This document shows, piece by piece, positions 13,200-46,768 of a DNA stretch of 64,000 nucleotides. Numbering within the stretch: the stretch's first letter is position 1; every line of letters begins with the position of its first letter. The stretch is taken from NCBI GenBank assembly GCA_964199315.1, contig OZ116708.1, forward strand, positions 9,548,001-9,612,000, given 5' to 3'. The notes under the pieces were generated by a model. The model made no database searches. It was given only the letters and a program-made list of their open reading frames with translations, and was not told where the DNA came from. The stretch comes from Orbicella franksi (lineage: Eukaryota). The translations under genes were made by a program, and so were the position numbers.

Positions 13200-13414
13200 G
13201 GTGTCTGGAGCGATTGCCGTTGACATTCCGATGACATTGCGATCGACTTGTTTCCGGTTTAGTTTCCCGCCAAAATGTGCGCTGCCCAGGCTCTTTCGCA
13301 TTTGGCGCTCACGGGCAAGATGGCGGTTTTCTTCCAAATTGTTCTTTCACAAAGCAAAATGTTGAGCTGTGGAACTGGGACTACAGGTGCACTAATCCAC
13401 AATGTTAGCACCAG
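13200..13414 (+). promoter_or_regulatory. Candidate promoter and first exon
   Basis: CpG-containing stretch with TTTCCGG, TTTCCCGCC (E2F-like) and AAGATGGCG (YY1-like/start context) motifs. ORF from ATG 13275 or 13320 ends at a consensus donor CCAG|GTATGT (13415). The downstream exon partner is unresolved. Confidence 0.4.
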
Positions 13415-13559
13415 GTATGTTACCTTTCACCGAGTCACTGACAGGAAGTTGAATTAATTACACTGTATTCGGATAACTTACAGCGATCGTTTCTCGAGTG
13501 CTCTCGATTTTTTCGTGTGAAGTGACGCCGGCTTTTCGTTTTGCCTTCTTCTGGACGTT

Positions 13560-14125
13560 ATAGATCGTTTTCACGTGACGTCAACACTTTCTAAAGTCCA
13601 AAACTAAAAAGCCACCAAAGTTTTTATCCTCATCAGGTATAAGAGGCTGTGTATTTATATCTGTTTACAATTGCACAGCTGAATAGCGTGCTTCGTTTGG
13701 AAACCAGAGCATTTTGAATTTCAGTTTTATGGAGTTCGTGACACAAGGCCACGATCGAGTTTGTTGAAATATATGCTTATCTCATGATTTTGAGCCTTTT
13801 TAGAAGTTAGTGCATTAGGAAAAATGCTTATGTGAATGCTTTTTTGTTCAATACTGATAGTTAGTCGCCTAGATAGCCAAAGCAAGTTCCAGATGTTTAC
13901 ACTGTTTTCCGCGGATGTACAGCAACATGGCGTTTCCATACAGGGCTCTGTAAATTTTTGCGAAACATTTCGACGAATATCTGAAGTTTGGGGCCTAAAA
14001 CAGGCCTAAAACTTGGAGAAGTGTGTTATTTAGTTATCTTTTATACCATCACAATTTCTTAGCTTTTTCCACTGGATGGTTTTCGATTTATTTTTTTTTA
14101 TTGCGTGACCATGAAAACGATCTAT
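13560..14125. mobile_element. Non-autonomous element with 14-bp TIR
   Basis: ATAGATCGTTTTCA ... TGAAAACGATCTAT. Confidence 0.6.
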
Positions 14126-14758
14126 TGAAACGAAACTGAAGCTCGAACGCGCTGACTCAAGCCTCGGTACAATTTTTTTTTTTTTTTTTAACTGCATTTG
14201 TTTTAGATTTGTGAAATTTATCTTACCAGTTCAATCCTTGGTCATTCGAAAATTTTAACTAAGCTAAGCTTTTTCAAGTTGTTAAAATATTTTTTTGCAA
14301 GCCCACTGCAGACCACAGACAACAATTCTTTTTACCCATTTATTGTGAAGTTGCTCCGATTTTAAAATAAAATTTAAGGGCATTGGAATTTAAACTTAAC
14401 AGGCCGGCCAGGCTCTATATATCAATATTCTACCATGGCTTTTAGGCTTTGGTCACAATGACTTGATTCTAGATTTGATTCCAATCTTCAGTCTGGTATC
14501 TGACTGCACTTATGGAAATTGAAATATGATTTTATTAGAACTGATAAGTTAATTAAAACAAAAATTGTTTTGGACACTAAATTTATTGATGTCTAGGTTA
14601 GGTAACATGCGACTGGTCTGGATGTTTGTCCAGCCACAGTAGGGTAACGTTTTGGGTGTGCATAAATTTGTTGGTATGTATAGCTCAGAGCACTAGGGTT
14701 ACCCCATGAACCTCCTTGAAAACTAGGCCTAGGAAAAAGTCTTTATAGTGTGATTTAA

Positions 14759-15078
14759 AGATGATTTCCAGTCCGTACTGCACAGTCTCAGCACCATAAT
14801 GTCTATAAACATTATAAGTTCTCACTTGATGGAATGCGAATCGATATTATTTGTTACAAACCACATACCTTATCATACAGCTGCAAAGTTGATTCATAAA
14901 GTGATACGAGAAAGAACGAAGCATAAAGCTTTGCATCGATAATGGCAGTTGACATGAAACTTTGAATTTACTTCATCTAAGCAGTTGCAAAATGTTCACA
15001 TTTTGTTGTCTTACGTGACACAAAACAAAAAACGAAAACAAACTCTTGAGAGTGCGCAGTACGGACTAGAAATCATCT
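14759..15078. mobile_element. Kolobok-type MITE
   Basis: TTAA-AGATGATTTCCAGTCCGTACTGCAC ... GTGCGCAGTACGGACTAGAAATCATCT-TTAA, i.e. TTAA TSD with AG..CT ends. Confidence 0.75.
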
Positions 15079-16072
15079 TTAAAATAGCTGAATTGTTTCA
15101 TCTTAATGATGACCAACATGCTTTCATTAAACCATTATTACTTATTTATTCCTGAATCAAAAGTGAATGAATGGTTTTTGAAATGTATAATGTTCTTAAA
15201 TGTTGTTCTTGTCCCAAAGTTGAAAATTATTGTTCTCACCGAGTTAAGAGCAGTTGCAGTACAAGGGTGAATCCTTTGATTACATTTGGATTACAAGATT
15301 ACAATTACAAGATCACTCACATCATAGTTCATCAAAGGAACTGATGAATCTGTGATCAGGGTATATTCATTGGTTCCTTTGATGTACCAATTGAACTGAG
15401 GGATCTTGGATCACTGATCCTGATCCAGATCACTCCAAAGAAATGCAGCCTAAGTCAGAACTATTCCTCAGGAATGAGCTAAAGTTTGTTGGGATTAGTC
15501 TCGTGATAAGAGCATGATTCACATTTGACACAGTTGGGCAATTTTAGTTACGGAAAGAATTAAGGAGCAAGGTTGATGCCAGCAACCCCGTGAGTGTTCT
15601 CCCTTTCAGTCCCTCCTAAAGTTCATCTATAAATCAAAGAATACAAGTTACAAACACTGAATGTATTTTCAAGGAATGAACTGGGTGCTAAAAATATTGA
15701 TTCATATGCATTGCTGGCTGCGATGTTGAAATGAAGGAAGGGATTAGTTTGATTCAATTTCAATTTCTTTGATACTTTTACCATTAACTGGAACTGGCTT
15801 ATATGCCAATAACATACCATGTTCTAATACCCCATCTTGGGGTACCTTAAATGAGACTGCTAACCGTGAAGGTTTGCTCATTTCACGTGAGTTATAAGTT
15901 TACACAGATCTGAATGTTCTTCCAAGGAGTGGACTGAATACTAAAAATATTGAGTAATATGCATTGCTGGCTATGAAGCTGGTGAAGGAAAAGATTTCTT
16001 GTAGTTTTATTTTAAAATTACTTTAAAATTCTTACTGTTAACAAGATTACCTACTTATCTTCCTTTCCATAG

Positions 16073-16258
16073 GGAATTCTCTACCATCAAGAAATCCCAA
16101 GGTGGCAAATATTTCTCCTGGGTTTCCTTCAGACTCTATCAAGCACAGAGCTGAGGGGACTACAGATGATTTTACTGGAACTGGCTCATATGCCAATGAC
16201 AAACCATCTTCTAATACCCCATCTTGGGGTACTCTTAATGGGATTGCCAACCGCAAAG
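16073..16258 (+). CDS. Acid-rich membrane protein, 62-aa repeat exon 1
   Basis: tttccatag acceptor and AAAG|GT donor. 186 nt, phase 1-1, open frame. Confidence 0.6.
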
Positions 16259-16444
16259 GTTTGTTCATTTCATGTCAGTTATAACTTCCAAGGAATGGAC
16301 TGGATACTAAAAACATTGATTAATTATACATGTGTGTATTACTGGTTGTGATGTTGATGAAGGAAGGGATTAGTTTGGTTCGATTACTTTGATATTCTTA
16401 CTGTTAACACAAATAACTACTTATAATGTATTTTGTTTCCCTAG

Positions 16445-16630
16445 GGAAATCTATACCATCAAGAAATCCCGAGGTGGCATATATTTCTTCTGAGTTTGCT
16501 TCAGACTCTGTCAAGCACAGAACTGAGGGGACTACAGATGATTTTACTGGAACTGGCTCATATACCAATGACAAACCGTCTTCTAATACCCCAGCTTGGG
16601 GTACTCTTAATTGGATTGCCAACCGCAAAG
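16445..16630 (+). CDS. Acid-rich membrane protein, 62-aa repeat exon 2
   Basis: tttccctag acceptor and AAAG|GT donor. 186 nt, phase 1-1, open frame. Confidence 0.6.
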
Positions 16631-16812
16631 GTTTGTTCATGTCATGTGAGTTATGACTTTCAAAGAATGGACTGGATACTAAATGCACTGATTAATATGC
16701 ATTGCTGCTTGTGATGTTGATGAAGGATGGGATTAGTTTGGTTCGATTACTTTGATACTCTTACTGTTAACACAAATAACTACTTACAGTATACTGTATT
16801 TTGTTTCCCTAG

Positions 16813-16998
16813 GGAAATCTATACCATCAAGAAATCCCAAGGTGGCAAACATTTCTCCTGGGTTTGCTTCAGACTTTGTTAAATACAGGCCTGAGGGGAC
16901 CACAGATGATTTTACTGGAACTGGCTCATATGCCAATGACAAACCGTCTTCTAATACCCCATCCAGGGGTACCCTAAATGGGATTGCCAACAACAAAG
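16813..16998 (+). CDS. Acid-rich membrane protein, 62-aa repeat exon 3
   Basis: Same splice sites as the other copies. 186 nt, open frame. Confidence 0.6.
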
Positions 16999-17176
16999 GT
17001 TTGTTCAGTTCATGTGAGTTATAACTTCCAAGGAATGGACTGGATACTAAAAACATTGATTAATATGCATTGCTGGTTGTGATGTTGATGAAGGAGGGGA
17101 TTAGTTTGGTTCAATTACTTTGATGCTCTTACTGTTAACACAAATACATGTACCTACCTATATTTTGTTTCCCTAG

Positions 17177-17362
17177 GGAAATCTATACCATCAAGAAATC
17201 CCAAGGTGGCAAATATTTCTCCTGGGTTTGCTTCAGACTCTGTTAAACACAGGCCTGAGGTGACCACAGACGATTTTACTGGAACTGGCTTGTATGCCAA
17301 TGACAAACCATCTTCTAATACCCCATCCAGGGGTACCCTAAATGGGATTGCCAACCACAAAG
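17177..17362 (+). CDS. Acid-rich membrane protein, 62-aa repeat exon 4
   Basis: Same splice sites as the other copies. 186 nt, open frame. Confidence 0.6.
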
Positions 17363-17427
17363 GTTTGTTCATTTCATGTGAGTTATAGATGTAACTTCCC
17401 AGGAATGGACTGGATACTAAAAATATT

Positions 17428-20390
17428 TAACAATTATTCGCCAAAGGCGAAGTGAATATTCACCAATGTTCACTGAGCCTGAGGCGAATAATTGTTTTAG
17501 TATAATTTTCAGAGGTGAATATCAAGGATTACAAAATAACGGACTAAACCATAAAAACACAGACGCAATTGTTTGTGTGCATACATGTATGCAGCCGTAG
17601 TTTTAATAAAGGTTACATGGACATCGATTGTGAATAAATTTACTCATCGAGTTTGGCAGTAAAACAAACGAGCGAAACACTACAAAAAATAAATTCATTT
17701 CGTACCTTTGTTTTATCGTTGTTGACTTCATTCGCAGTTGTCATCATCGCCTAAGAATGGGGAGCTTTAGTTTGTAGAAAAATAAATTTCAGCCAATCGA
17801 TCTGACCTGCTGGGGATCGACGTAACCATTGCGTTTACAATTCTTAAAAGCTTTAAATACAGGTTCTTGAAAAGATTTTTCGTCCAAGGGCGACAGCAGT
17901 CATTTTGAAAATTTCCATCCTTTCAAATATCCTGGACTTCGAGTGATGTCTTTTGAATAAATGAAAACTTCATTCAGCAACTGTCCACCATGTTTACTTG
18001 CCGAATGAGAAAAACGATAACGAAACCAATATAAGGAAAATATATTAAATTACAATGGATGATAAAATACTAAAATTTATTAAATACTAAAATTCATCAT
18101 AAGATACTAAAATTCATTATAGAAATACTAAAGATCAGAATTAAACAAAAACGTTTTAAGCTTAGTTTTAAACGTATCCACTGATGGGGCACTTCTCACA
18201 TCAAGTGGGAGGCTATTCCACAGTGCTGGCGCACAAGAGGAAAAAGTGCGTCCCCCGTAGGTCTTTGTCCTAAACACCGGTATGTGCAGTCGCAGGTGAT
18301 CATTATTTGAACGAAGACACCTTATCGGTTGACGAAGATTAATAAGTTCCGCCAAGTAACAGGGTGCTAAACCGTTTAAAATTTTGTAAGTAAAAAGTAA
18401 AATCTTAACAACAAGTGGGAAATCACATGACATGCGCGCCGTTTGTAAAATTAGTTGAATGAAAAATTTGAAAGCGAAGCAAGTGAATTTGCTCAATGAA
18501 ATTACAATCAAGTAGAATTCAAGGAACGTCTATCAAATTAACGAGATATAACCTTGGTCAGAAAGTTTGAAAAGCGATCAAGTTCGAGTCATGGAGAGGA
18601 GCCGAATAATTGTGCACTACAAAAACAACAACAACAGCAACCATTTATTTGTACTCACAATTTATAAAATAATTACAATAAACATTAAATTAGTATAGAG
18701 TACTGCCTGGCCAAAATAACCATAAGGGCTAAAAAGAATGTACTTGTAAAATTAGTTGCACATTGCCGTTGTAATAATGCTGCGGAAAACTTTGATCGCC
18801 ATGTGATACAAACGTTGTGCCAAAATTATTCTCGACAAGACCGCTTTCAGGATTCCCTTGCTTTGAAAGCCTTGGCATTTCGAGCTGTATGTTGTTGGCC
18901 AGATTCAGAGTCAGGGACAGAAACTATCTTAGCGTCAGATTCATCTTCGAGCTTCAGAATCTCCGAGGCCTACTTCGGTTCAGCTCAAAACACTCAACTC
19001 CTGGAGGTGTTTTTTGCAAGGACACAATTGTTGGCGTTAGGTGTTGTTCATTCTCCCGTCCTCGTTGGCCAAAAAAGAGCCCGAGATAAAACTGGGGTCG
19101 TGCTCTGTAGCCGTGCTGAATTTTTGCTCTCGGCCGGTCCGAGCTCGCTTAAGTCGAACAGTTTCCTCGTCTGCTCATTTGAAATTGGTTTCTTATGGAC
19201 TACGCCGGCAATGATGCCTGTTTTCCTGAGGCCTTTTACAAATGCTGTAATAATTTATTTGCCTGGTCAGAGGTAACTAGAAAACGGTTTGTTGTGCGGC
19301 GGCTTTCGAAGGAAATTGTCAATGGCGGCTCTAATGGATTTCGCAATACGTGCCATCTTTCTTCCTCGCAGACGTGTAAAAACACTTCAGACAAACATTC
19401 AGTTCTTCCTTTGACATTTCTTACATCGGTTTCGAAATTTGGTGCCACCAGGACTAGCAAGCCATTCTGTTAAGGTAAACATTGTTTTTGTTACATAATC
19501 TTCATGAATGCGAAAATCTCGACGGTCAGATTTCAATTTTGCAACTTTTAAAGGAAACTTAACGTATACGTACCGTTAAATAATCTTATCTCGAATTTTG
19601 TGGCTTTTTTGCTTTTACTGGGACGGCATTGTCCATAATTTCCTGTATTTCTTCTGTAGATAGCTCACCGAGTCTGCTTTTTTTCATCCATTTTTTTGTC
19701 GACGAAACTTGGGTTCCCGCAAAAAGGTTTATGCCTACCGACATTTACCGCATTCGTTTCCATATAAGGACAAACGCAGGTATAATGGCTGGTAACCGAG
19801 ATCCCGTGAACCAATCAGAAAGCTAGAGTTGCATTATCCGAGGTTGAGAATTTAATAAAACGTCATATGATGAGATTTGCGACCATTCAGCTTGTCCAAT
19901 TCTTATATTCACCCCTGGAAATTATACTAATTAATCTAACTAATCGAGATTTTTATGTGGTGATAGTTGATGAGGCCAAATGCCGAATCAACTATCACCT
20001 CATAGAAATCGAGAGCGAATAATCTACTTGTTTCAGTAGAATTCTTATTAAAATTTACTTCAAATAACGGTTTCCAATTATTTCTTAACATATTATTAAA
20101 CTTTGCACCTGAAAAAGATCGCTCGCATTGAATCGTCATTTAAATTGAAGTTGTGCGTGCACGCACAACAGTTTTTTCAATAATTTCAGCTTTTTTAAAA
20201 GTCAAGAAACCCTAAATGTCTTTTGTTTAGACTTCTCAGGAATTTAATTATCCATTTGCATCAAAATTTTCCTGCAAAACTTTGGAAAAACGAAAAAAAA
20301 AACGTTGCCATTTCCTAGACGACCTCAATTCACGATAATGGCTGACAGTGTTCAATGGCTCAACCAATCAGATTACAGCATTTGCGTAAT
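17428..20390 (-). mobile_element. About 3-kb insertion carrying a decayed Crypton-like (DUF3504/tyrosine-recombinase-related) element
   Basis: Splits the repeated intron between ...aaaaatatt and gattaata... Minus-strand fragments translate to GELSTEEIQEIMDNAVPVK (about 19615-19670), FVKGLRKTG..VHKKPIS..LGPAESKNSARLQ, FYLGLFFGQRGRENEQHL (about 19030-19092) and EDESDAKI, with frameshifts. These motifs were recognised from memory, not by database search. Confidence 0.65.
18128..18410 (-). mobile_element. 3' fragment of an L2/Crack-type LINE ORF2 nested in the insertion
   Basis: KILLFTYKILNGLAPCYLAELI...LRS...YGGRTFSSCAPALWNSLPLDVRSAPSVDTFKTKLKTFLF is a typical LINE ORF2 C-terminus. Confidence 0.85.
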
Positions 20391-20504
20391 GATTAATATA
20401 CATTGCTGGTTGTGATGTAGATGAAGGAAGGGATTAGTTTGGTTCAGTTACTTTGATACTCTTGCTGTTAATACAAATACTTACTTATATTTTGTTTCCC
20501 CTAG

Positions 20505-20681
20505 GGAAATCTATACCATCAAGAAATCCCGAGGTGGCAAATATTTCTCCTGGGTTTGCTTCAGACTCTGTTAAACACAGGCCTGAGGTAACCACAGATG
20601 ATTTTACTGGAACTGGCTCATATGCCAATGACAAACCGGGGTATTCTTGGGGTATTCAAAAACGGATTGCCAACCACAAAG
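20505..20681 (+). CDS. Acid-rich membrane protein, repeat exon 5 (59 aa)
   Basis: Same splice sites. 177 nt because of a 9-nt in-frame deletion; frame is open. Confidence 0.6.
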
Positions 20682-20850
20682 GTTTGTTCATTTCATGTGA
20701 GTTATAACTTCCAAGGAATGAACTAAAAATATTGATTAATATGCATTACTGGTTGTGATGTTGATAAAGGAAGGGATTAGTTTGGTTCAAATACTTTCAT
20801 TGATACTCTCACTGTTAATACAAATACTTACTTATATTTTGTTTCCCTAG

Positions 20851-21401
20851 GGAAATCTATACGATCAAGAAATCCTGAGGTGGCAAATATTTCTCCTGGG
20901 TTTGCTTCAGACTCTGTTAAACACAGGCCTGAGGAGACCAAAGATGATTTTACTGGAACTGGTTCACATGCCAGTGGAAAACAACCTTCTAATACCCCAT
21001 CTTGGGCGACCCGAAAGGGGATTGTCAACAGCAAAGAGCTGTTCATTTCAAGTGAATTGAACAAACTGCTTAAGCTTAAGCACATCCATTTGGGAAAACA
21101 TCTTTCCAAGAAAGTTGCACATCTCCTGAAATCAAGACCAAGGCTACTGGCGTCTTTTAATAAGGAACTAAAGGATGCCAGCTATCATTCTTCTAAAGTG
21201 AGAGATGCTCAGTTACATGGACTACCAAAGTCTATGCATGGGACAACCATGAATTCAAACAAACAGGGTCCAGAGATGGATGACCAAGTGATTAACAGTT
21301 TTGCTGACTTGACGAATGCTGGCACTGTGGCTCGCGAACCTTCTGGATCTGATAACCCTGAAGCAAATCTGGCCCATGAGAGGCATGAACCACACCATAA
21401 G
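20851..21401 (+). CDS. Acid-rich membrane protein, repeat copy 6 reading through into the first basic block (ELFISSELNKLLKLKHIHLGKHLSKKVAHLLKSRP...)
   Basis: Acceptor ttccctag at 20850. The donor is lost in this copy (AAAGAG) and the ORF continues. A putative phase-0 donor CATAAG|gtacct at 21402 matches the phase-0 acceptor at 22737, but this donor is weak. Confidence 0.6.
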
Positions 21402-21548
21402 GTACCTGATCAAGACATAAATGTCCATTCACCCTCTGATATTGAGTTTGGCCTTAATGAAGCTTAACATAAGTTATCTTAACCAATAGCATAAATGCAT
21501 TGAAATTCATCCCCTGATACTGAATTAACCTAAACATAAGTCACCTTA

Positions 21549-22246
21549 GGTAAAAAAGGAAAGGAATTAAATGGTTGTCACTGGCTAAAAATATGGTTAT
21601 CGGACGTTTCGGCCACTACTGTTGCCTTCTTCAGCAAAAGATGGAAAATGCAAATGTTAAACGGCGTCCTGCTAGAATATGTAATAGATGTGTGGTAAAA
21701 CTAAATGAGCAATAGTCTCTAGAGTATTCTTAATGAGTGTAAAAACTCTGAATGCCATTGTACACGTTCGGTAGCGCTATGTGTTCGTTTATAGCGTTCC
21801 TATCTCGCACGGAATGCCAAGCTTCAAGAATTAGTCTTTGTTTCCATACTGATGATCTGTCGACAATTTCAACGTTCTCCAAATCTATTTGGTGACCGTT
21901 GAGCATATGGTGTTTGGCCAATAAAGAGTTTTTGTCCAATGTTGCTATAGCCTTTGCGTGTTCTTTCATACGTGTTTTTAACGCGCGTGATGACTGACCA
22001 ACATAAACACAGTCACAATCTTTACATTTGATCTTGTAAACAATGCCTCTGGAAGCACTCATTAAGAATACTCTAGAGACTATTGCTCATTTAGTTTTAT
22101 CACACATCCATTACATATTCTAGCAGGACGCCGTTTAACATTTGCATTTTCCATCTTTTGCTGAAGAAGGCAACAGTAGTGGCCGAAACGTTCGATAACC
22201 ATATTTTTAGCCAGTGACAACCATTTAATTCCTTTCCTTTTTTACC
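21549..22246 (-). mobile_element. 5'-truncated Penelope-like element: GIY-YIG endonuclease fragment flanked by inverted 191-bp pseudo-LTRs
   Basis: ORF 21730-22062 (GIVYKIKCKDCDCVYVGQSSR.LKTRMKEH...LILEAWH). 21549-21739 is the near-exact reverse complement of 22056-22246. Confidence 0.9.
21603..21634 (-). ncRNA. Minimal hammerhead-ribozyme-like motif in the Penelope pLTR (second copy at 22161-22192, +)
   Basis: CTGAAGA-A-GGC-AACAGTAGTG-GCC-GAAA-C-GTC: core CUGANGA and GAAA, 3-bp stem II, palindromic ACGT stem III and a GUC triplet. Stem I is weak. Confidence 0.55.
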
Positions 22247-22737
22247 AATTTTTAACATGCCTGGCTACACACCGAACATTTATAAGTCACCTTAATCAGT
22301 AAATTTATATGCATGTATTCACCCCTGGGGGTAGCGGTGTTACTTTTTGCTTGGCATGTACCACTGGCCTCTCGGAACCCCTGCCCCATTATAGTCTATT
22401 TTGTGGCCTGTGAGTTATAAACCCCATCTTAGTCACTTTTGGGCAAACGTAATTCTTCCGATCTTAACCTAGTCCTATTCTGTCTATGCATCTACAGGTT
22501 CCCTGTAAAGCGTTTAAAGTTCAAATGAACCAAAATTTAGACATTTTTTTGATTTGAGTTCAATGTGTTTACTAAGTATGAAATAAACATATTCTGAAGT
22601 TTCAAACAAATTGGACGAATCATTGCGGAGAAATCGGAATGTTAAAATCATTGTTTTTTATCCTTCATATCATAGAACCTGGGCTCTTTACGTAAATATT
22701 GCCACTATTGTTATATTGTGAGTTTTTACTGTTATAG

Positions 22738-25484
22738 GGGAATCCAAGTGCCCTTAAAGGTATAGAACCTGAAACAAAAACAGACAAAGTGTCAGAATCT
22801 GACAATGACTTGGACTCTGGTGAACCTGGAGATGAACACCCTGAATCAGAGACAGAAGAACTGTCAGGATCGGACACTAATTGGGACTCTGGTGAACCTA
22901 TAGATGAGGACCCTGAATCAGAGACAGACGAACTGTCAGGATCAGACACTGACTGGGACTCTGGTGAACCTAAAGATGAGGACCCTGAATCAGAGACAGA
23001 CGAACTGTCAGGATCAAACACTGATTGGGACTCTGGTGAACCTGAAGATATGGAGCCTGAATCAGAGACAGATGAACTATCAGGATCAAACACTCACTGG
23101 CACTCTGGTGAACATGGAAAAGAGGACCCTGAATCAGAAACAGATGAACCGTCAGGATCAGACACTGATTGGGACTCTGGTAAACCTGAAGATGAAGACC
23201 CTGAATCAGAGTCAGACAAACTGTCAGGATCAGACATTGATTGGGACTCTGGTGAACCTGGGGAAGAGTACCCTGAATCAGAGACAGACAAACTGTCAGA
23301 ATCGAACACTCATTGGGACTTTGGTGAACCTGAAGATATAGAGCCTGAATCAGAGACAGATGAACTGTCAGGATCGGACACTGATTGGGACTCTGGTGAA
23401 ACCGGGGAAGAGGACACTGAATCAGAGACAGACGAGCTGTCAGGATCAGACACTGATTGGGACTCTGGTGAACCTGAAGATATGGACCCTGAATCAGAGA
23501 CAGAAGAACTGTCAGGATCGGAAACTAATTGGGACACTAATGAACCTGAAGATGAGAACCCTGAATCAGAGACAGACGAACTGTCAGCATCGGATACTGA
23601 TTGGGACTCTGGTGAACCTGAAGATGAGGACCCTGAATCAGAGACAGACGAACTGTCAGGATCAGACACTGACTGGGACTCTGGTGAACCTGAAGATATG
23701 GAGCCTGAATCAGAGTCAGATGAACTATCAGGATCAAACACTCACTGGGACTCTGGTGAACATGGAAAAGAGGACCCTGAATCAGAAACAGACGAACCGT
23801 CAGGATCAGACACTGATTGGGACTCTGGTAAACCTGAAGATGAAGACCCTGAATCAGAGTCAGACAAACTGTCAGGATCAGACATTGATTGGGACTCTGG
23901 TGAACCTGGGGAAGAGTACCCTGAATCAGAGACAGACAAACTGTCAGAATCGAACACTCATTGGGACTTTGGTGAACCTGAAGATATAGAGCCTGAATCA
24001 GAGACAGATGAACTGTCAGGATCGGACACTGATTGGGACTCTGGTGAAACTGGGGAAGAGGACACTGAATCAAAGACAGACGAGCTGTCAGGATCAGACA
24101 CTGATTGGGACTCTGGTGAACCTGAAGATATGGACCCTGAATCAGAGACAGAAGAACTGTCAGGATCGGAAACTAATTGGGACACTAATGAACCTGAAGA
24201 TGAGAACCCTGAATCAGAGACAGACGAACTGTCAGCATCGGATACTGATTGGGACTCTGGTGAACCTGAAGATGAGGACCCTGAATCAGAGACAGACGAA
24301 CTGTCAGGATCGGACACTGACTGGGACTATGGTGAACCAGAAGATATGGAGCCTGAATCAGAGACAGACGAAGTGTTAGGATCAGACACTGACATGGTCT
24401 CTGGTGAACCTGAAGATGAGGACCCTGAATCAGAGGAAGACGAACTGTCAGGATCCGACACTGATTGGGATTCTGGCAAACCTGAAGATATGGAGCCTCA
24501 ATTAGAAACAGATAAGCTATCATTGGACACTGAGTGGGGTACCCAAAAAAAGAATGTCGATAGCAAAGAGTTGGTCATTTCAAGTGAATTGAACAAACTG
24601 CTGAAACTCAAGCACATCAATTTGGGAAAACATCTTTCCAAGAAAGTTGCACACCTGCTGAAATCAAGACCAAGCCTATTGGCCTCTTTTCATAAGGAAT
24701 TAAAGGATACCAGCCATCATTCTTCTAAAGTGAGAGATGCTCATTTACGCGGATTGCCAAAGTCCATACATGGGATAACCATGAATGCAAACGAACAGGG
24801 TCGAGAGATTGATGACCTAGTGAGTAACAGTGCACCTGAAGATATGGAGCTTCAATCAGAAACAGATAATCTGTCATCGGACACTAAATGGGGTTCCGGT
24901 GCTCCTGGAGATGCCGACCCTAAATCACAAGTAGATAAAGTGCCATTGTCTGCCATTGAGTGGGACGCTGGATCACCTCAAACTCGTGAACCTGAATTGA
25001 AGCACAATGTATTTTCATCACCGGATATTGAGTCAGATACTGCTGGAGTTCCAGGAGCAGTGGAATCCAAAGTAATGCTGCCGGAACGATCTCAGTTGTC
25101 CTCGCAAGATAACCCAGAATCTGTCCCATCAGTGGAAGCCCCTGAACAGGACACAATTAAAAAACAGAAATTGAAATTGCCCACAAAACATTCCAATACT
25201 GTGGTTATGAAAAAGCTTCTTTTCAAAGACAAGGAATTCGAGACAAAAAAAGCGAATGGTTTGCCACTGGAAATCCCAAAGAAATCTCATGGGAAAAATG
25301 GTCATGTAAATCTCAATATTAGATTGGAGTCACTTGGTAATCAGGGTGTTCATACCAAGAAAGGAAAAAGGAAAAATTCAGAAAGGGAAAGTGGAGGAGC
25401 TGTTGCTAGGGTTCTAATTACGTTATTCGTCGTTGGAGGACTGTTGGTGGTATTATTGATGGCTGCCTGTTTCGCGTTTGCTTG
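22738..25484 (+). CDS. Acid-rich membrane protein, main exon: 24 x 24-aa D/E/S-rich repeat, second basic block, linker and TM helix
   Basis: Acceptor ttttactgttatag, 2747-nt open frame, TM VLITLFVVGGLLVVLLMAACFAFAW, donor TG|GTAAGT at 25485. Confidence 0.85.
22792..24519 (+). repeat. Coding minisatellite: 24 x 72 bp (SGSDTDWDSGEPEDEDPESETDEL) with a 648-bp (9-unit) higher-order duplication
   Basis: Direct reading of the translation. Units 4-12 (23008-23655) recur almost exactly as units 13-21 (23656-24303). Confidence 0.95.
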
Positions 25485-25747
25485 GTAAGTTAAAATTATG
25501 TACTTTATTATGTTATTTCTATACTTTTGCTTGGATGTTATAAACATGTAGCTACCACCATCACGAGCTACACATATCCGGACCCTTCATTATTTAAATT
25601 TATTTTGCTAAAATTCATCCAACATTAGTTAGGATTCACAGGCATCACTATTCTCGGTGACCGAAAAATCTTGACCCCAAGCAAAATGATTCCCTGGGAA
25701 GCGCTGCCACTCATGTAGTCAGCTTACACACATATTATTGCAAAGTT

Positions 25748-25770
25748 AATAATACATGAAAAAATTACGC

Positions 25771-25803
<33 letters not shown>

Positions 25804-26130
25804 TGCAACACCAGTGCAAATTACACATCGTAATTCTGGATTATGATTGACTGAAGGACAATAGGAAATTTTCTAAGCCAATGATATCGCGTAAAGTAAT
25901 GAAGAAACTTTTGTGCGGAACCTTTGAAAAACGTTTTCTCGAATGAGGAAAAATGGCTTCAAGAAAGATCTTCTGGCACTTCCTCCACGCGAAGTTCTTC
26001 ATGTTTATATTATTAATAAGTAATAATACGATTTTTTACGTTCACTTTGGAGTTAATGTGCACTTGTGAGTTTTTTCAAAAGTTTACTCGTGCAAATCAG
26101 TTCAAAATTGAACTCGAAACCGTATTATTA
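25748..26130. mobile_element. Non-autonomous insertion in the paralog B intron
   Basis: Absent from the paralog A intron (caaagtaaatgtcttc). Ends TAATAATAC / GTATTATTA are inverted. Confidence 0.55.
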
Positions 26131-26185
26131 CCTATACAAATGACTTCAACAGACTCAATTAATGCATTGTTATGTTTTTGCTCAG

Positions 26186-26364
26186 GCCACTGAGAGAGTA
26201 TTATCAACAGTTATCCCAGCGAGTGAACAACAGAGACGTGGAATCTGGGCAGGGTGATGGCCATGACCTCCAGAGCATCAGAGTGGATAGAAACCAACCT
26301 CCAGCAAGTCAACCTCAGCTTTACTACTCAACTTATCGGCCGGAACCTACGTCAGTGAATCCAG
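26186..26364 (+). CDS. Acid-rich membrane protein, juxtamembrane cytoplasmic exon (WPLREYYQQLSQRVNNRDVESG...LYYSTYRPEPTSVNP)
   Basis: ttgctcag acceptor and CCAG|GTGCAA donor. 179 nt, phase 2 in and phase 1 out. Conserved with 1090-1250. Confidence 0.7.
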
Positions 26365-26743
26365 GTGCAAAAACATTTTCAAATCAATAGGTTAGGTTAC
26401 AATATGCGTACCTTTTGGCCTTTTTGGTCAATATACTTAATTTACATGGCGGTTGACGTTCCGTATCTTAATGTACCTGAAATTTACCCTGTAATGTGCT
26501 GAAGGAGTCGGAGTGAAAGCAGTCGAAGGCTGATATTTCACCCTATTCTTCCTTTGTGCTCTTGTTACTTCCTCGCGTGTTTTATAAACAGAACAAAAGA
26601 GATGCACAGAACAAAGCACGGCCAATCCTGTTTTGTTTTTTTTGTTTGTTTGTTTTTTTGTTTTTTGGTAATTTTGGTTAATTCATTTCATTCGTTGAAA
26701 CAGTGGTGAAGATTCAATCAATCATCAACTCTTTTTATGGCAG

Positions 26744-27315
26744 GAAATAGCCGCAATGTACGTGTGAGTGACAGGCAGGCCTACTCCCGTGGAGGGGTGC
26801 AAGCTTATCAAACCACAAGCGCACACTACAAGGGCAAGGAAAAGACAAAGGATGACGTTATTTCTGACGACAAGAAGAGGGACCCTCGAAATGTGGAAAG
26901 GAGGAAGATTATCAAACAGCAAACTTCCCAAAGAAGAACCTCGTTTGCTGACAGCATCGCTATCGCCAAATCAGTTATCGATGGGCATTCTAAGACCAAA
27001 CAGTTCGAGAAGAAGGCCTCTGAAAGGCGGCGAGTGATCAAACAATCGTCATCCACTCCTGGCTCATCAACTGGCGAGAAACAACGGTCTTTTATCCAAG
27101 AGCTTGAAACCGCTTGTTCGGTAATATTGCCAGGCGCTGATCACCAAAAGAGTGTGGAAAAGTCAAAAGACAGACGTCGCACAATTAAGGATCAATCTGC
27201 TGGAAAGAGACGGCGATCACTGGCAGAGGAGATTGGAGATGCTAAGAAAGTTATTGTGGATAGTGAGAGGAAGTACGAAATATCACCTGCTGTAGTGGAG
27301 GAGGTCAGAGATTAA
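26744..27315 (+). CDS. Acid-rich membrane protein, terminal exon (cytoplasmic tail ending VVEEVRD*)
   Basis: tttttatggcag|GA phase-1 acceptor. ORF is conserved with the paralog A ORF at 2265 onward. Confidence 0.7.
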
Positions 27316-28855
27316 AATGCAATTTCTCTTTTTAATACCAATACAGTCACCCATGCGAGAGGTCACAATCTCGGGGTGTGTGGACCCTGTTAGTCTTTAT
27401 GTAGGACACTGAAACTTTTATCCTATACTAGACCACTATCAGTTTGATTTCGCAACCCCATTCTGGAATTGGCACCAAAAACCCTACCCTATCCCAGACT
27501 TGCTATTTTCCATGCTGCAACTTTATCACTATCGTAATCCAGCATACGTTAACCAAAGAAATATCTTATGTAATCACTTCCGAGTTTCAATTTCCATCAT
27601 AGAACTCCAGGTAAATTATTTATACACTTGCCACTTCCCGGGTAAATTGTACCCTATTCTAGACCAAAACTGTCTGATATCTCTACCCTATACCGGACTA
27701 AACTACCCGAAAACCACGCCCTTCACAGCAGCATATAAATGGAATAATGACGGGAAATACCTTGTAGAAATAACGTTATGGTATCGTATCTTATCGCATC
27801 GCATCGTACATAACTATATGGCTTATATATGGAAGTACCCCTCCCCCCGGGGGTACTTCCATTTATAAGCCACTCGCCATCTATTCTATTGTAGATAGTG
27901 AGTGACCTTAAGCAGTGTGCGGTTGTTAACGAAATGGCGGCCGCTTCTTTTTAAGGATTAGATAAAGCTTTGAATGACTGGCAGTTTTATCTAAAACAAG
28001 TAAGTTGCTCGCTCCTGATTTCTAGGCGTGATAGAAATCCCGCGCACATAATCAAAGTGTTAAAGAGAAGCATGGCTTTCAGTATATGTGCAACACCTGT
28101 TGTTTTGTCTCCAGCCCAATAGGCCACATTCGATGTATCAATATTCTAGCATGGCTCCAAAGCTTTCAGGACTGACTTCTATATTTGATGCTGTCTTTGT
28201 ATCCAAGTCTCTTTTGGGAATTGAGGGACAAAAGAAACTTAAAAAATCTACAATTTTGACCCGAAAGCCTCGGAACCATGTTAGAATATTGATATATCGA
28301 ACGTGGCCTATTCACAATTTTCCTTCTTTGTTTTCGACAATGACAGATGACTGTTGGACAAAAGCCACGTACTTGCGAGAGCTACAGCTATTCTGATATA
28401 CTGGACCTCCCCCTATTTAAGGATAAGCGGTCTGGACCAGAGGCATCTAAGGCTAAGAGAGCTGCCCAGAGTCGTGATGTTGACAAGTCTACAAGGTGAA
28501 TAATTTATTATTATGGCTCATTCGCGACTGGTGCGGTGGTCCAGTTGTTAGGTCATGAATTGTTGAACTAGAATTTAGAGATCGTATCCTAAGCCCTGGC
28601 TGGCTTTGGGGTAAGATACGTCTTTCTATCAGAGTGACTCTCTCTGTTCCAGAATATAAATTATTGCCAAAAACTGGATCATTGGATAAGGTAGGTTAAG
28701 ACTTTTCATTGGCTAAGCGAGCATGGTGTATGAGTCATTAGACCATACTCTTCAAATATGGTCATCGGAAGCGTACTTTTTTGGTGCATACTTATATATA
28801 TATATTTTTTTAATTTTAGTTATCTATATTTCGGGGGAGTTTTCTAATAAAACAA

Positions 28856-29665: not shown

Positions 29666-30951
29666 AGGTTTGCCTGGACGCCAGCAGGTCAGGAATAATA
29701 AGTCTGCATCGAAAAGGAGTACTTCTAAAGCTGACCAAAGTGAGGATGTTGAAGAGATGAGCAGGTAAATATTACTTACTTGTGACAGGTGTTATAAGAA
29801 TGTGTTTTATAAGAATATCGAGGCTGAAATTGGCAAAATTTTAAGAATATCTTAAGAATAAATCAGAGCCTGAGATTTTGAAAAGAGAATCACTTTGTGT
29901 GTTCAAAATTTGTAAATACAATTCAATTACATGTTTTTTTTTTAACTAAACCGTACAAGATTCTTCCTTTCTCTAGATGCAATCTAGCATGTATGTGAGG
30001 CAATTTAGGGTTATTTTGTAGCTTAGGAATTTAATTTTTGATGTTCAAAGTAAACAAGTTGTTTTCTTTTTTTCATCGCGGAATTTTCTAAAAGAAATAG
30101 AAAACATGTTCTCCGTGTTTCTATTGAGTTTTAGTATATATCTACCAGCGTTCTATCACGAATGCCGCTCTCTGACTGGCTACGCTAGGCAAAATGTATC
30201 TATTCTGTTGCAGATAGAGAGTATATAGTAGTTTTCACTGGGGGGCCGCTTCTTTGCGTTTCCGAAATGTCTTTGAAAGATAATTTAGATTAAAGTTTTG
30301 AACGACTTCTAGATTTTTACAGAAAATAATTAGCTTATTCGCTCTTGATTTCTATGCGTAACAGTTGACTCGAGCTGAGTCTTCGTCAACCATCACGCGA
30401 TAGAAATCTCGAGCTCACAATCCACTTATTAAATAGAAACACGATTTTTAACCAATAAGCGCGCATATTTTCTTTGGGCTATTGTCTAAAATCATTTGTA
30501 AATACCACCAACGCTATTTCTAGAATTGCTAATTTCTTGAGCATATACTCTGGCCAGCATTGCCAAGGTCATATTCATGTCATATTTATGATTAAAAGCT
30601 TCCCTCAAGTCTTATCTATATATTAGATTACACTTGAACCTACCAATATAGTTGAACCTCTCAATATAACAAAAACTAGTTCGAACGGATAGTTGGGGCT
30701 GGTAGCAAATGACTGAGAAAAAGCCAATATCGAAGGGAAAATAATTTGAGTATACGAGATAACGTGGAGTTTAAGCTGATCAAGGTTCATTTGTAATCAC
30801 AAGTCATGTATGCATTATTTTAAGATTCAGCTATCTGGATTTAATTGTTCACTGGTTAGGGGCTTGTCTGGGCTTGTATTCGACAGCGATGATGAGGCTG
30901 CCTGGGATCAAGTTTGAAGATGATGATTAAGACTCCATGTTTGAAACTGAG
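29666..30951 (+). pseudogene. Two orphan exon-like segments (29666-29764 and 30860-30951), possibly a decayed gene fragment
   Basis: First: tttgctag acceptor and CAG|GTAAAT donor, 99 nt, phase 2-2, open (GLPGRQQVRNNKSASKRSTSKADQSEDVEEMS). Second: phase-2 compatible (RGLSGLVFDSDDEAAWDQV*) but stops early. Confidence 0.3.
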
Positions 30952-31054
30952 GTACCTGTATCTAATATGTTATCTTAATTAACAATTATAGATCCGTAGC
31001 CCGCAAGGGCTACGGGTCAATAGCCCACCAAGCGAAGCTGAATGCTCTATTGAC

Positions 31055-34950: not shown

Positions 34951-36871
34951 TCACTCTGGCTTTCTTTTGCTAATACCATTCACAACACTTTGTTGATCAC
35001 CATAAACTGGTGTTTTAGCCATCCCATACAAATATGTTGCTAGCATCACCAAACCAGCCCCAGAGACAAATGGCACACTAAGTTTGAAGCTGAATAAATA
35101 AACAGACATTACACAAGAAATCACAATAGCAACTGCTGCCGCAAATCCCTTGAGGATATTATCAGCGTACTTAATGACCACACCCACCAGGAGCCCACCA
35201 AAAGCCTGCATTGCAATAATTGCCCAGACAAGTTTGTGGTATCCAAATAGAACGCCTTTTTCTTTAATCTTGTCTCCGTCGTTTATGTACATGCCAACTG
35301 TGCCAATGATGACGCCAAATGTGGCGAGCTGGAAGTTCCTTGCCCAGAGAGGAGTATGAGTGCCTTTGAGGGTCTTTTCAAAGTAAACACCTGAATGATA
35401 AAAAACAAGGTCGATCACTTGAATGTTCAACAATGTCATATTTATCTCTTGATTAGACTTGAATCACCTCCCTTTGTTAAATACAGCAACAGGTTTGTTG
35501 AGAAAGATTTGAAAAATGGAGAAAAATAAATACAGGTAAAATTGCTATGTGAAACCCAATTCCTGTTAACATCTCACTCCATTAATTATTTTCGCTTGGG
35601 AATCGATAATCTACCAGAAAGCATATCTTACAACTTACTAGTGATGCTGCTCTGCATTAGCATATAGGGCATACAACATACATAACACAGGACACCTATC
35701 AAGCTGACAGGGTTCACACTGTTTTTTTGCCCTAAAAACGTTCAGGACTTTTCAAGGTCATTGTAGGGCACAATTCCAACTTTTCAAGTCTTACAAAGTT
35801 GTTTCATGTTTTTTGGATGTATAATAAATCAGCCTCAATAGCACTCTTCCCACCCTCTGAACCACCAGCCTACATGGTCAAGGCAGCATGAAAGAGGCCT
35901 CTGCAGAGAGGACAGCCACAGTGGTCAGCCCTCAAGAATTGTAAGGGTTACACTTCACAAGCAGTAAAAACACTGTGCACTTGTCTAGTCATTCTCATAA
36001 TGCCAAAAATAATTTCAATGGAGAGCTACATGTAGCTGTTGTGGAATCAGCACTTAAATGGTGATCAGAGTGCTTTTTTAAGCTAACCAAACTGCTAAGT
36101 AAAAACCTGGTTAACCATGACTATTTCCCTTTATTCATGACTGTTCATCACTAGTTGCTGTTCATTAATCACATTTTTAAATGCTCATCTTCCATTTAAA
36201 ATTAACACACACACAATCAACGTTCAACTGACCTGCAAATCCAGAGCACATACTTGAAGCCACAACAGCGCAAAGACCCAACAATCGATTCTGTGTTTGG
36301 GACAAAGGGTTCTGTGTCGGGAGAGTCTCTTCAGGACTCTGTGCCACAGGACCATCAACAGGCTGCAACTGAACCACAGACACACCAACGAACAACATGA
36401 ACAGAGACAGCCACTGAACCTTGCCGATGGACTTCTTCAACATGGCAACTGAGAACAGAGCTGTCATCAGAATCTTCAGCTGATAAGACACCTGTTGAAG
36501 GAAATTACAATAAAAGTATAAACAATACAATGTATTAAGTAAATAGAGGATATTACATGCCCACACATGGATATGAATTTTATCTTCAAGTGTTCAACTC
36601 GATATCTCATGAGTGAGTGCAGCGAAAGAGTGAGATATGGAATTGAACACGAGAAGATAAAATTCGTATCTACAAGCGGGCATGTAATATTGTTTATTAT
36701 ATAAACATAACAATGATGACGTTTTTGACCATTTTCTGAAGATGTCCGATCACTTTCCGAAGATTTCTGAAGATTTTCCAAAATTGTTCCGAAAGGCCAG
36801 ACGAACACTTCTGAACATTTTACAAACATTAAAAACTATAAAACTATAAAAAGTGCAATATAAATTAATAA

Positions 36872-36938
<67 letters not shown>

Positions 36939-46200: not shown

Positions 46201-46768
46201 CAACAAACAGCTAACAAGAATAAAATGGGTGTCTTTGATTCTTTTATCTGTGGGTGTCACCATGGTTCAAATTGATTCACACACTTCAGTAACCACAAGT
46301 TTACTAACAGACAGTGATAATACAAAAAAAGAACAATCTGTGCCTCTTGGTATGACTGCAGTTCTTGCCGCTTCCTTAGTGTCGGGATTTGCGGGTGTTT
46401 ACATGGAGAAAATCTTCAAGAAACAGAGAAGGACTTCATTTTGGATCTCAAATGCCCAACTGTACACTTTTGGAATGTTTTTAGGGTTAATAGGTGTCAT
46501 TTACCAAGATGGGGTTGAAATTTCTAGGATGGGATTCTTTTATGGATATGACATTGTAGTTTGTCTGGTTATACTGTTTGCATCTGCTGGTGGTATTATT
46601 GTCTCACTAATCTTAAAGTATGCCTCATGTATAACTAAAGGATTTGCGACATCTTGCGCCATTGTTCTATCTAGTATTATTTCAGTGTATTTATTTGATT
46701 TTGTTCCAAGTGTTTTGTTTGTTGCGGGTGCTTTATCTGTTATTGCTGCAGTTTTGCTGTACAGTTAA
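43293..46768 (+). CDS. Diverged SLC35A-family nucleotide-sugar transporter (SLC35A2/A3-like), about 337 aa, 3 coding exons
   Basis: Exons 43293-43335, 44470-44819 and 46148-46768 are in phase with GT-AG boundaries. Motifs RYSRT..YFSSTAVFLAEVVK, IQNNLVYVA..LESTTFQ|ITNQLKILTTAIFS, FAGVYMEK and GFFYGYD. Confidence 0.88.
44071..44371. mobile_element. Kolobok-type MITE in intron 1 of the + strand transporter
   Basis: TTAA-AGGGACACAGTCAGC ... GCTGACTGTGTCCCT-TTAA. Confidence 0.8.

Follow-up and report, generated by a model that had tools for sequence, protein, structure and literature searches.

The window analysed here, a stretch of 64,000 nucleotides from the coral Orbicella franksi (contig OZ116708.1, positions 9,548,001 to 9,612,000, around 40% GC), carries on its plus strand a gene for a large acid-rich protein with a long cytoplasmic tail. 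A first-pass annotation, made from the letters alone, had described a giant modular acid-rich single-pass membrane protein between 16073 and 27315 and had joined phase-compatible exons into more than 1650 residues. Both points are supported by a check of splice borders and reading frame: nine exons, all with AG...GT borders and compatible phases, join into 1,657 codons with 0 internal stops. In all likelihood it encodes a single-pass membrane protein of type I, a topology supported by the anemone homologues described below, which carry a signal peptide, a transmembrane helix and a tail. The parts of the gene are listed here by position in the window, with a caret marking exon borders.

11414-11468, + strand: candidate first exon, with ATG, an 18-residue signal-peptide-like sequence MRVIWIVLIAFTFAFLTPG and a phase-1 donor CCG^GTAAGT
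16073-16258, + strand: Ser/Thr cassette exon 1, symmetric phase 1, 62 residues; AG/GT borders and frame
16445-16630, + strand: Ser/Thr cassette exon 2; borders and frame; ratio of nonsynonymous to synonymous substitution rates (dN/dS) among copies mostly <1
16813-16998, + strand: Ser/Thr cassette exon 3; borders and frame; dN/dS among copies mostly <1
17177-17362, + strand: Ser/Thr cassette exon 4; borders and frame; dN/dS among copies mostly <1
20505-20681, + strand: Ser/Thr cassette exon 5, 59 residues, with an internal 9-nt deletion
20851-21401, + strand: exon with the sixth Ser/Thr unit, reading on into Lys/His block 1; phase-0 donor AAG^GTACCT
22738-25484, + strand: large exon of 2,747 nt with the acidic array, Lys/His block 2, a disordered juxtamembrane region and the transmembrane helix; donor TG^GTAAGT, phase 2
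22768-24512, + strand: acidic repeat, 24 x 72 bp, consensus PESETDELSGSDTDWDSGEPEDED; Tandem Repeats Finder (TRF) score 2370, 24.2 copies, no indels
24580-24720 (approximate), + strand: core of Lys/His block 2, SELNKLLKLKH...KKVAHLLKSRP.LLASF.KELKD; alignment A2; AlphaFold2 (AF2) helices at residues 17-68 of 24514-25482
25402-25484, + strand: transmembrane helix VARVLITLFVVGGLLVVLLMAACFAFA-W, the sole internal hydrophobic segment; AF2 helix with a predicted local distance difference test score (pLDDT) of ~90
26186-26364, + strand: cytoplasmic juxtamembrane exon, W^PLREYY...SIRV...Tyr/Pro-rich, phase 2 to phase 1
26744-27303, + strand: tail exon with three repeat units; likeliest end at the donor GAG^GTCAGA
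27313-27315, + strand: stop codon of the first-pass annotation, probably intronic
28347-28499, + strand: probable last coding exon, MTVGQKPRTCESYSYSDILDLPLFK...KSTR, with stop 28497-28499 and acceptor cag^ATG; homologous to exon 4 of the paralogue mRNA

The two ends of the gene

The exon chain within 16073-27315 stands, but the range itself is not the extent of the gene: it holds neither a start codon nor a signal peptide, and its 3′ end is probably wrong. Upstream, 11414-11468 is the sole phase-1 signal-peptide-like exon in 2990-16073. With a chance rate of ~1 per 13 kb, about one such match is expected by chance, so this exon stays a candidate. As to its conservation, the orthologous locus (L006) ends ~0.7 kb short of it and the distant loci begin inside the cassette array.

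Downstream, the most probable end of the tail exon is 27303, with continuation in 28347-28499. The annotated end at 27315 is probably wrong because the mRNA of a tandem paralogue splices at the homologous donor, and the same donor is present here, 27303^GTCAGA. The basic tail that had been put at around 250 residues is present, but its length is probably ~296 residues and that of the whole protein ~1,721. In the alignment of the tail (A1), conservation ceases exactly at the Val after EE, and GT follows EE in distant corals too. The downstream donor of the paralogue has been lost by mutation, its site reading GATAAG here and AATGAG in the orthologue, and the frame continues to a stop; this frame is also open in the orthologous locus (L001) and in a contig 97% identical to the studied locus (L007). 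A tblastn search of distant Tara contigs did not detect the C-terminal exon, which is too short to detect in this way. Extended by the candidate first exon upstream and by this last one, the model counts 1,721 residues, with the C-terminus ...KSTR; its composition is 22% Asp and Glu (D/E), with a pI of 4.44.

Evidence for a protein-coding gene

Because several frames of the acidic array are stop-free, gene status could not be read from the array, and other evidence was needed. The same property, which extends over hundreds of codons on both strands of the 72-bp repeat, underlies the reading of the locus as a decaying or non-functional repeat, or an assembly artefact, in which the long open frame simply results from a tandem repeat that lacks stops. 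Also in keeping with that reading, L007, a short-read contig and possibly collapsed, shows only ~9 acidic units, and the array includes a 648-bp duplicate with 99-100% identity. Several lines of evidence make this explanation scarcely credible and argue for a genuine protein-coding gene that belongs to a tandem pair.

First, only the plus-strand frame spans the whole array and reads on into the non-repetitive Lys/His, transmembrane and tail parts. The splice sites are intact and the window has no Ns.

Second, the neighbouring paralogue is transcribed and spliced. The window starts within its last large exon.

1-9075, + strand: 3′ end of the tandem upstream paralogue, exons 1-258, 1090-1250, 2265-2830, 4299-4380 and 9059-9075, all with AG/GT borders

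Its mRNA is represented by a spliced 1,722-nt contig of metatranscriptome type (L008; JGI sample 3300008047, P0150), which the spliced paralogue model from the window matches at 1079/1105 nt (97.6% identity). This contig proves the junctions ...FAFAW^PLRKYY, ...NP^G^NS and VVDE^, and the model of the studied gene shares the transmembrane^W-P and NP^G^NS junctions. In the contig the tail exon stops short of its in-frame stop codon: a splice after VVDE (GAG^GTC) joins it to an 82-nt exon ...SYSYTDILDLLPQFK, followed by a short last exon; the last two exons of the paralogue differ from those of the studied gene in that a splice donor retained there is lost here.

Third, a distant coral has a spliced mRNA (Logan runs SRR10968379 and SRR13022825) with a short acidic ectodomain, a transmembrane helix, W^PVRKYY, three tail units and LVEE^M...LSYHELDL. 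The junction of the juxtamembrane exon recurs in two mRNA contigs, L008 from the paralogue and P0160 from the distant homologue, as well as in an Acropora digitifera model. A C-terminal Y-x-[DE]-[IL] motif is conserved, given YHEL in the distant coral mRNA and YSDI here (a YxxPhi motif at 28389-28400, in the last exon).

Fourth, the tail exon has 86 homologous open reading frames (ORFs) in coral assemblies, and an orthologue with a tail exon 85% identical lies at a syntenic locus (L001/L006). That locus presents Ser/Thr cassettes, a Lys/His exon, a 1,585-codon open exon, a transmembrane helix and two tail exons, and after them comes the nucleotide-sugar transporter gene that also follows the gene studied here. 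Its long frame has stayed open despite many changes in unit length.

Fifth, dN/dS is below 1 in every segment. Relative to the orthologue it is 0.30 in the tail core, 0.37-0.42 in the Lys/His regions and 0.57 in the acidic array. The parts preserved by selection are the cytoplasmic module and the Lys/His helix rather than the acidic array.

A predicted ectodomain of repeats with opposite charge

The N-terminal part of the ectodomain is encoded by a 368-bp intron-plus-exon unit repeated in tandem at 15667-17427 and 20390-21058 (TRF score 2085; blastn of one unit against the window). In each intact unit an acceptor, CCCTAG^GG, is paired with two in-phase donors, AAAG^GTTTGT (62 residues) and CAT^GTGAGT (67 residues), both giving symmetric phase-1 exons. 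The 62-residue version is the more likely, because two cassette copies in the orthologous locus L006 retain only the AAAG^GTTTGT donor. Where the first-pass annotation had counted five or six Ser/Thr-rich repeats of 62 residues, we find six units of about that length, five as cassette exons and a sixth at the start of exon 20851-21401, in which both cassette donor sites are mutated; the richness in Ser and Thr is only moderate (S+T 23%). dN/dS between cassette copies is mostly below 1, and the motif DD(F/Y)(T/S)GTG is kept across relatives. The first part of this array and the insertion that interrupts it are as follows.

15667-17427, + strand: first part of the 368-bp array, including a degenerate pseudo-exon 15784-15886 without acceptor (TRF, blastn, sequence reading)
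17428-20389, no strand: insertion of ~3 kb splitting the cassette array, seen as a gap in the blastn matches of the unit; its ORF fragments look retroelement-derived, for example ORF 18128-18511 on the minus strand

A Tara Pacific contig of a distant coral (L002, 218-7300) has homologous cassette exons that combine a Ser/Thr unit (DDYSGTG, a canonical-looking glycosaminoglycan (GAG) site) and a basic block in a single exon. These exons start in phase 1 and end in phase 0, which precludes direct chaining, so that the way in which the family's exons combine is not the same in all lineages. The same combination in a single exon occurs in several paralogues.

The acidic array agrees closely with its earlier description as 24 copies of a 24-residue unit with about 45% D/E and usually one Trp: there are 24 units of 24 residues, 42% D/E, with Trp in 22 of the 24. 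Within it, lag analysis finds a duplicated block of nine units (648 bp), 99-100% identical over ~500 bp; this duplication is recent. The two Lys/His-basic blocks and the one transmembrane helix were also found where the annotation had placed them. Alignment A2 indicates that the two blocks are homologous to each other, and their core, LGKHLSKKVAHLLKSRP.LLASF.KELKD, is almost invariant in 14 homologues. AF2 places the Lys/His helices in an otherwise disordered, non-globular model of this part of the ectodomain (predicted template-modelling score (pTM) 0.16). The ectodomain has no Cys, and its acidic array offers trypsin almost no cleavage sites.

The ectodomain evolves fast. The orthologue has more, and more irregular, acidic units than the studied gene, its 1,585-codon exon holding five Lys/His blocks besides; the distant coral ectodomain has only a few acidic Trp motifs; and the array is absent from family members P0151 and P0153. 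The large acidic array is a lineage-specific expansion, since the more distant coral has a short ectodomain. The locus displays several routes of such evolution together: tandem duplication of an exon with its intron, minisatellite expansion inside an exon, and loss and gain of splice donors.

The degenerate final acidic unit KLSLDTEWGTQKKNVDSKEL (24514-24560) aligns with the end of a Ser/Thr unit KQPSNTPSWATRKGIVNSKEL (20990-21040). This alignment suggests that the 24-residue acidic repeat arose when the Trp-containing end of a Ser/Thr unit was amplified and became acidic. An EF-hand Ca2+ loop in the acidic unit was considered and rejected: compared by eye with the 12-residue pattern, DTDWDSGEPEDE violates loop positions 4, 6, 7 and 8. 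The intron before the large exon holds a further insertion.

21548-22282, − strand: intronic insertion with a Penelope-type GIY-YIG ORF 21730-22062; Pfam GIY-YIG match, blastn gap against L007

Contig L007, 97% identical, lacks this insertion, which is therefore recent or polymorphic.

Ser-Gly sites and the comparison with proteoglycans

The 24 acidic units contain 38 Ser-Gly dipeptides, all in an acidic context, which raises the question of a membrane proteoglycan built by the logic of syndecan or aggrecan. The acidic-flanked Ser-Gly sites (ELSGSD, DSGEPED) would then be xylosylated and bear dense chondroitin or heparan sulfate chains, and the Lys/His helices would bind GAG. Acidic-flanked Ser-Gly is reportedly a GAG attachment signal, as described by Esko and Zhang in 1996. 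Sites of this kind recur in relatives, with DDYSGTGSG in the Ser/Thr unit of the distant homologue and DESSGEDF and FDSGDEED in an anemone homologue. Syndecans and other membrane proteoglycans also resemble the predicted protein in having type I topology, acidic-flanked Ser-Gly sites in a disordered ectodomain, and a tail better conserved than the ectodomain.

Other observations keep this possibility among the unlikely ones. Ser-Gly is only partly conserved across species, less so than the Trp and the acidic residues: in the acidic unit of another species the first Ser-Gly becomes SRS and the second is variable (DSAE, YFAK, DFDE), with Trp and acidic residues retained, a slight weakening of the case. 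In this genome Thr replaces Ser in the cassette motif (DDFTGTG), and DSGE also fits the S-x-E motif of secretory (FAM20C-type) kinases, which would be an alternative modification. Neither a Syndecan nor another Pfam domain was found. Syndecan tails are only ~30 residues long, divided into C1-V-C2 regions and ending in EFYA; the tail described here consists of ~300 residues of repeat units and its C-terminus is ...KSTR. GAG attachment, phosphorylation in the secretory pathway and plain cation binding of the array are all readings of short motifs.

Transmembrane mucins and sialomucins of the MUC1, CD43 and podocalyxin type are similar in their tandem-repeat ectodomain of varying copy number, single transmembrane helix, phosphorylatable tail and brush function. 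They differ in composition, the protein described here having 20-24% S+T and an array that is acidic instead of Pro/Thr/Ser-rich, and no Pfam SEA or other mucin domain (including NIDO, AMOP and VWD) was found in it.

A conserved, probably cytoplasmic tail of repeated units

The tail is the best-conserved part of the protein (alignment A1). Its three units of ~40 residues each were delimited by that alignment and by a hidden Markov model (HMM) of the unit.

26872-26979, + strand: tail unit 1, KKRD.RN.ERRKIIK..TS.RR.S(L/F)ADSI.IAKSVI
26998-27129, + strand: tail unit 2, K.FEKKASERRRVIK...R.(M)SF..EL.TACSVI.P
27145-27258, + strand: tail unit 3, ..S.E(K/R)SK(D/E).(R/C)R.IK....GKRR.SL.EEI..AK.VIV

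Each of them starts from a basic stretch (E(K/R)RR-V-I-K), to which are added an RRxS-hydrophobic site and then a short helix; the family is defined here by two or more such units in tandem, the helix being of A(K/R)SVI type. Coral tails have three units each. RxxS followed by a hydrophobic residue is present in 26 of 34 units, and [RK][RK]xS followed by a hydrophobic residue in 20 of 34; the site Ser of each unit is almost invariant in A1. AF2 models the tail as helical and non-globular (pLDDT 65, pTM 0.26). An AKAP helix binding RII was considered and rejected, the hydrophobic pairs of SxADSIAIAKSVI lying out of AKAP register (judged by eye against the published pattern). Multi-site substrates of PKA or PKG such as PPP1R17 (G-substrate) offer an analogy only: they too have repeated sites for basophilic kinases in a basic, largely unstructured polypeptide, but there is no Pfam PPP1R17 match here.

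An unnamed hexacorallian family

A profile of the tail retrieved 48 representatives among 1.84 billion proteins. Those with names comprise three uncharacterised proteins of Nematostella, single proteins of Exaiptasia and Oculina, a partial A. digitifera model and a Desmophyllum fragment, all hexacorallian; a weak Wolbachia match (E ~2.5e-4) was set aside as spurious. Units with the RRxS site and helix occur in the Nematostella, Exaiptasia and Oculina proteins, and three of them in both the studied tail and that of the paralogue. E-values from the unit HMM are circular, the model having been trained on family sequences, and independent support comes from pairwise BLASTP and from the library profile search. 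BLASTP of the tail against Nematostella XP_048584653 gave E = 3e-15, with alignments in several registers as is usual between repeats; the juxtamembrane exon had no significant match to that protein, and an alignment by eye of ESG...D motifs with it was dropped for that reason. A single transmembrane helix precedes the tail units here, with a signal peptide that is a candidate only; the signal peptides of the anemone homologues are clear, and two family members have no transmembrane helix.

That the protein belongs to no named family, as first suggested, holds in all searches made. Pfam, run with all six modules (E up to 1) and six homologues, returned no match for the family, only Sushi, HYR and Ig domains on one anemone ectodomain; a search of PDB sequences with a profile of the tail alignment gave nothing below E = 0.9; and the database relatives are unnamed ORFs or entries called 'uncharacterized protein'. 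A full-length coral model is absent from the protein collections searched, which hold only an exon-sized fragment and the partial A. digitifera model. On the basis of these searches, the family appears to be found only in Hexacorallia, the stony corals and sea anemones, and to be unnamed.

Nematostella LOC116610250 (XP_048584653.1), LOC5522360 and LOC5517363 and Exaiptasia LOC110250287 are true homologues of the tail (profile E 1e-18 to 1e-24). XP_048584653 shares the layout as well, with a signal peptide, an 885-residue Cys-free ectodomain (21% D/E, pI 4.5, including a 200-residue window at 35% D/E), one transmembrane helix and a basic tail with five units. The anemone proteins differ in their ectodomains, which cannot be aligned with that of the studied protein and have no 24-residue Trp repeat, Ser/Thr cassette or Lys/His motif. 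LOC5517363 carries the tail behind Sushi-HYR-Ig domains, and the number of units varies among homologues from 3 to >5. All of the anemone homologues are uncharacterised and give no function.

Acidity and calcification

A biomineralisation role, proposed in the first-pass annotation, does not follow from these data. The proposal would make the gene a membrane-anchored skeletal acid-rich protein, whose array would bind Ca2+, amorphous carbonate or aragonite at the interface between calicoblast and skeleton, might be shed, and whose tail would report to the cell. In composition the protein falls among coral 'acidic' proteins, for which >35% D+E has been called 'highly acidic' and >14.5% D+E with pI <4.5 'acidic' (bioRxiv 10.64898/2026.03.24.713908); the array has 42% D/E and the whole model 22% with pI 4.44. 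The array is also much larger in the studied coral and its orthologue than in the distant coral. Furthermore, many coral skeletal matrix proteins are membrane proteins with ectodomains occluded in the skeleton, including the acidic SAARP2 and SAARP3 (PMC4890752).

Those two proteins also remove the novelty that had been seen in a membrane-tethered acid-rich coral protein: SAARP2 and SAARP3 (CARP5, acidic SOMP), from stony corals, are acid-rich and membrane-anchored by a C-terminal transmembrane helix, have been proposed to hold the calicoblast against the mineral, and belong to a group with Asp-rich runs and a conserved non-acidic domain (PMC4890752). The studied protein differs from SAARP2 and SAARP3 in its strict 24-residue units of D/E/S/T/W, its Lys/His motifs and its conserved tail of ~300 residues. 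To our knowledge, no long conserved cytoplasmic tail has been described in SAARPs. Sequence searches, in which SAARP sequences themselves were not aligned directly, detected no sequence relation to SAARP2 or SAARP3. A search with the 323-residue non-repeat ectodomain and transmembrane part (candidates of 178-565 residues), its sensitivity limited by a word prefilter, returned 12 unnamed ORFs and no protein named SAARP, CARP or SOMP, and the Acropora homologue as query likewise retrieved no SAARP, CARP or SOMP entry.

One argument against a skeletal protein is phylogenetic. Nematostella and Exaiptasia do not calcify, and the family's layout and tail, present in both, predate calcification. A skeleton-specific role is therefore possible but unsupported, since these anemones share the tail and the overall layout. 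The repeat, moreover, is a mixed D/E/S/T/G/P/W unit without a poly-Asp run, and accession numbers of the named homologues occur in the main text of no paper, supplementary tables and raw mass-spectrometry data lying outside that search; the sample and run identifiers likewise led to no paper. None of the evidence requires a specific role in calcification, and acidity and coral origin do not make a calcification protein when the layout predates skeletons. We regard a skeletal function as unlikely.

A proposed cell-surface polyanion with a regulated tail

The reading we favour, with about even confidence, is that the gene encodes a cell-surface polyanion restricted to Hexacorallia, with a tail that is regulated by phosphorylation and can be sorted. 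From N to C terminus, the predicted ectodomain, Cys-free, intrinsically disordered and made of blocks of opposite charge, would present six basic Ser/Thr units, a helical Lys/His motif, the polyanionic array of 580 residues and a second Lys/His motif ahead of the transmembrane helix. Inside the cell would follow a basic tail of ~300 residues, with a SIRV/Tyr-rich juxtamembrane stretch, the three units of ~40 residues and the YxxPhi signal in the last exon. The ectodomain would act as a fast-evolving anionic brush that binds cations or matrix, with Ser modification adding charge, and the Lys/His helices may be a conserved binding or counter-ion element. The tail would be the conserved functional core, a multi-site array of substrate or docking sites for basophilic kinases of the PKA, PKG or CaMK type, with the YxxPhi signal controlling trafficking.

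Several points weigh against this interpretation. Tail phosphorylation, trafficking through YxxPhi and cation binding are read from motifs. A transcript of the studied gene itself was not found in our searches, the mRNA support coming from the paralogue and the distant homologue, and the signal-peptide exon is a candidate. The pTM of the tail model is low, and the top feature neighbour of the tail in the ESM Atlas, PPP1R17/G-substrate, scores 0.66, below the level of evidence. Finally, the strong expansion of the array to at least 24 units in this coral lineage could reflect a gain of function related to calcification.

A bolder version of the cell-surface polyanion, which we consider distinctly improbable, would make the three-unit RRxS-helix tail a new Hexacorallia-specific phospho-switch that couples a polyanionic sensor of cations or matrix to PKA/PKG-type signalling and YxxPhi endocytosis; in reef corals, an explosive growth of the acidic Trp repeat would have brought this ancient module to the interface of calicoblast and skeleton. 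If true, the gene would link contact with mineral or Ca2+ directly to cell signalling. A conserved, unnamed cytoplasmic repeat that is absent from Pfam and sits on different ectodomains in corals and anemones is in any case a candidate for a lineage-specific signalling or trafficking module, one that can be tested in the genetically tractable Nematostella. Public annotations fragment or miss the gene, so that the corrected model could be used to search coral skeletal proteomes and single-cell atlases again.

Other features of the window

Downstream of the gene lie two nucleotide-sugar transporter genes of SLC35A type, arranged head to head, with Pfam Nuc_sug_transp matches at E = 1e-47 and 1e-59, respectively.

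34951-39858, − strand: SLC35A-type transporter gene, syntenic in the orthologous locus L001
40361-40653: 21-bp minisatellite array, 14 copies
42102-42332: 21-bp minisatellite array, 11 copies
44415-46768, + strand: SLC35A-type transporter gene

The two minisatellite arrays, in opposite orientation and ~1.45 kb apart between the transporter genes, could be the terminal repeat arrays of a transposon. A non-coding block at 30626-30989 is 89-97% identical to the orthologous locus, with surroundings at 73-80%; neither strand is open, Rfam gives no match (nor does it anywhere in the window), and the lack of an open frame rules it out as an extra exon of the gene. Further signal-peptide-like first exons with phase-1 donors at 55867 and 62746 on the plus strand (MKLCLMFLSVAFLGAMA... 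and MCRFLFLSFALFCASLVEG) probably belong to other genes for secreted proteins. A single-exon ORF at 60132-61499 on the minus strand encodes 455 residues that match nothing in Pfam; with its hydrophobic anchor at the N-terminus, the product resembles a Golgi protein or a membrane protein of type II.

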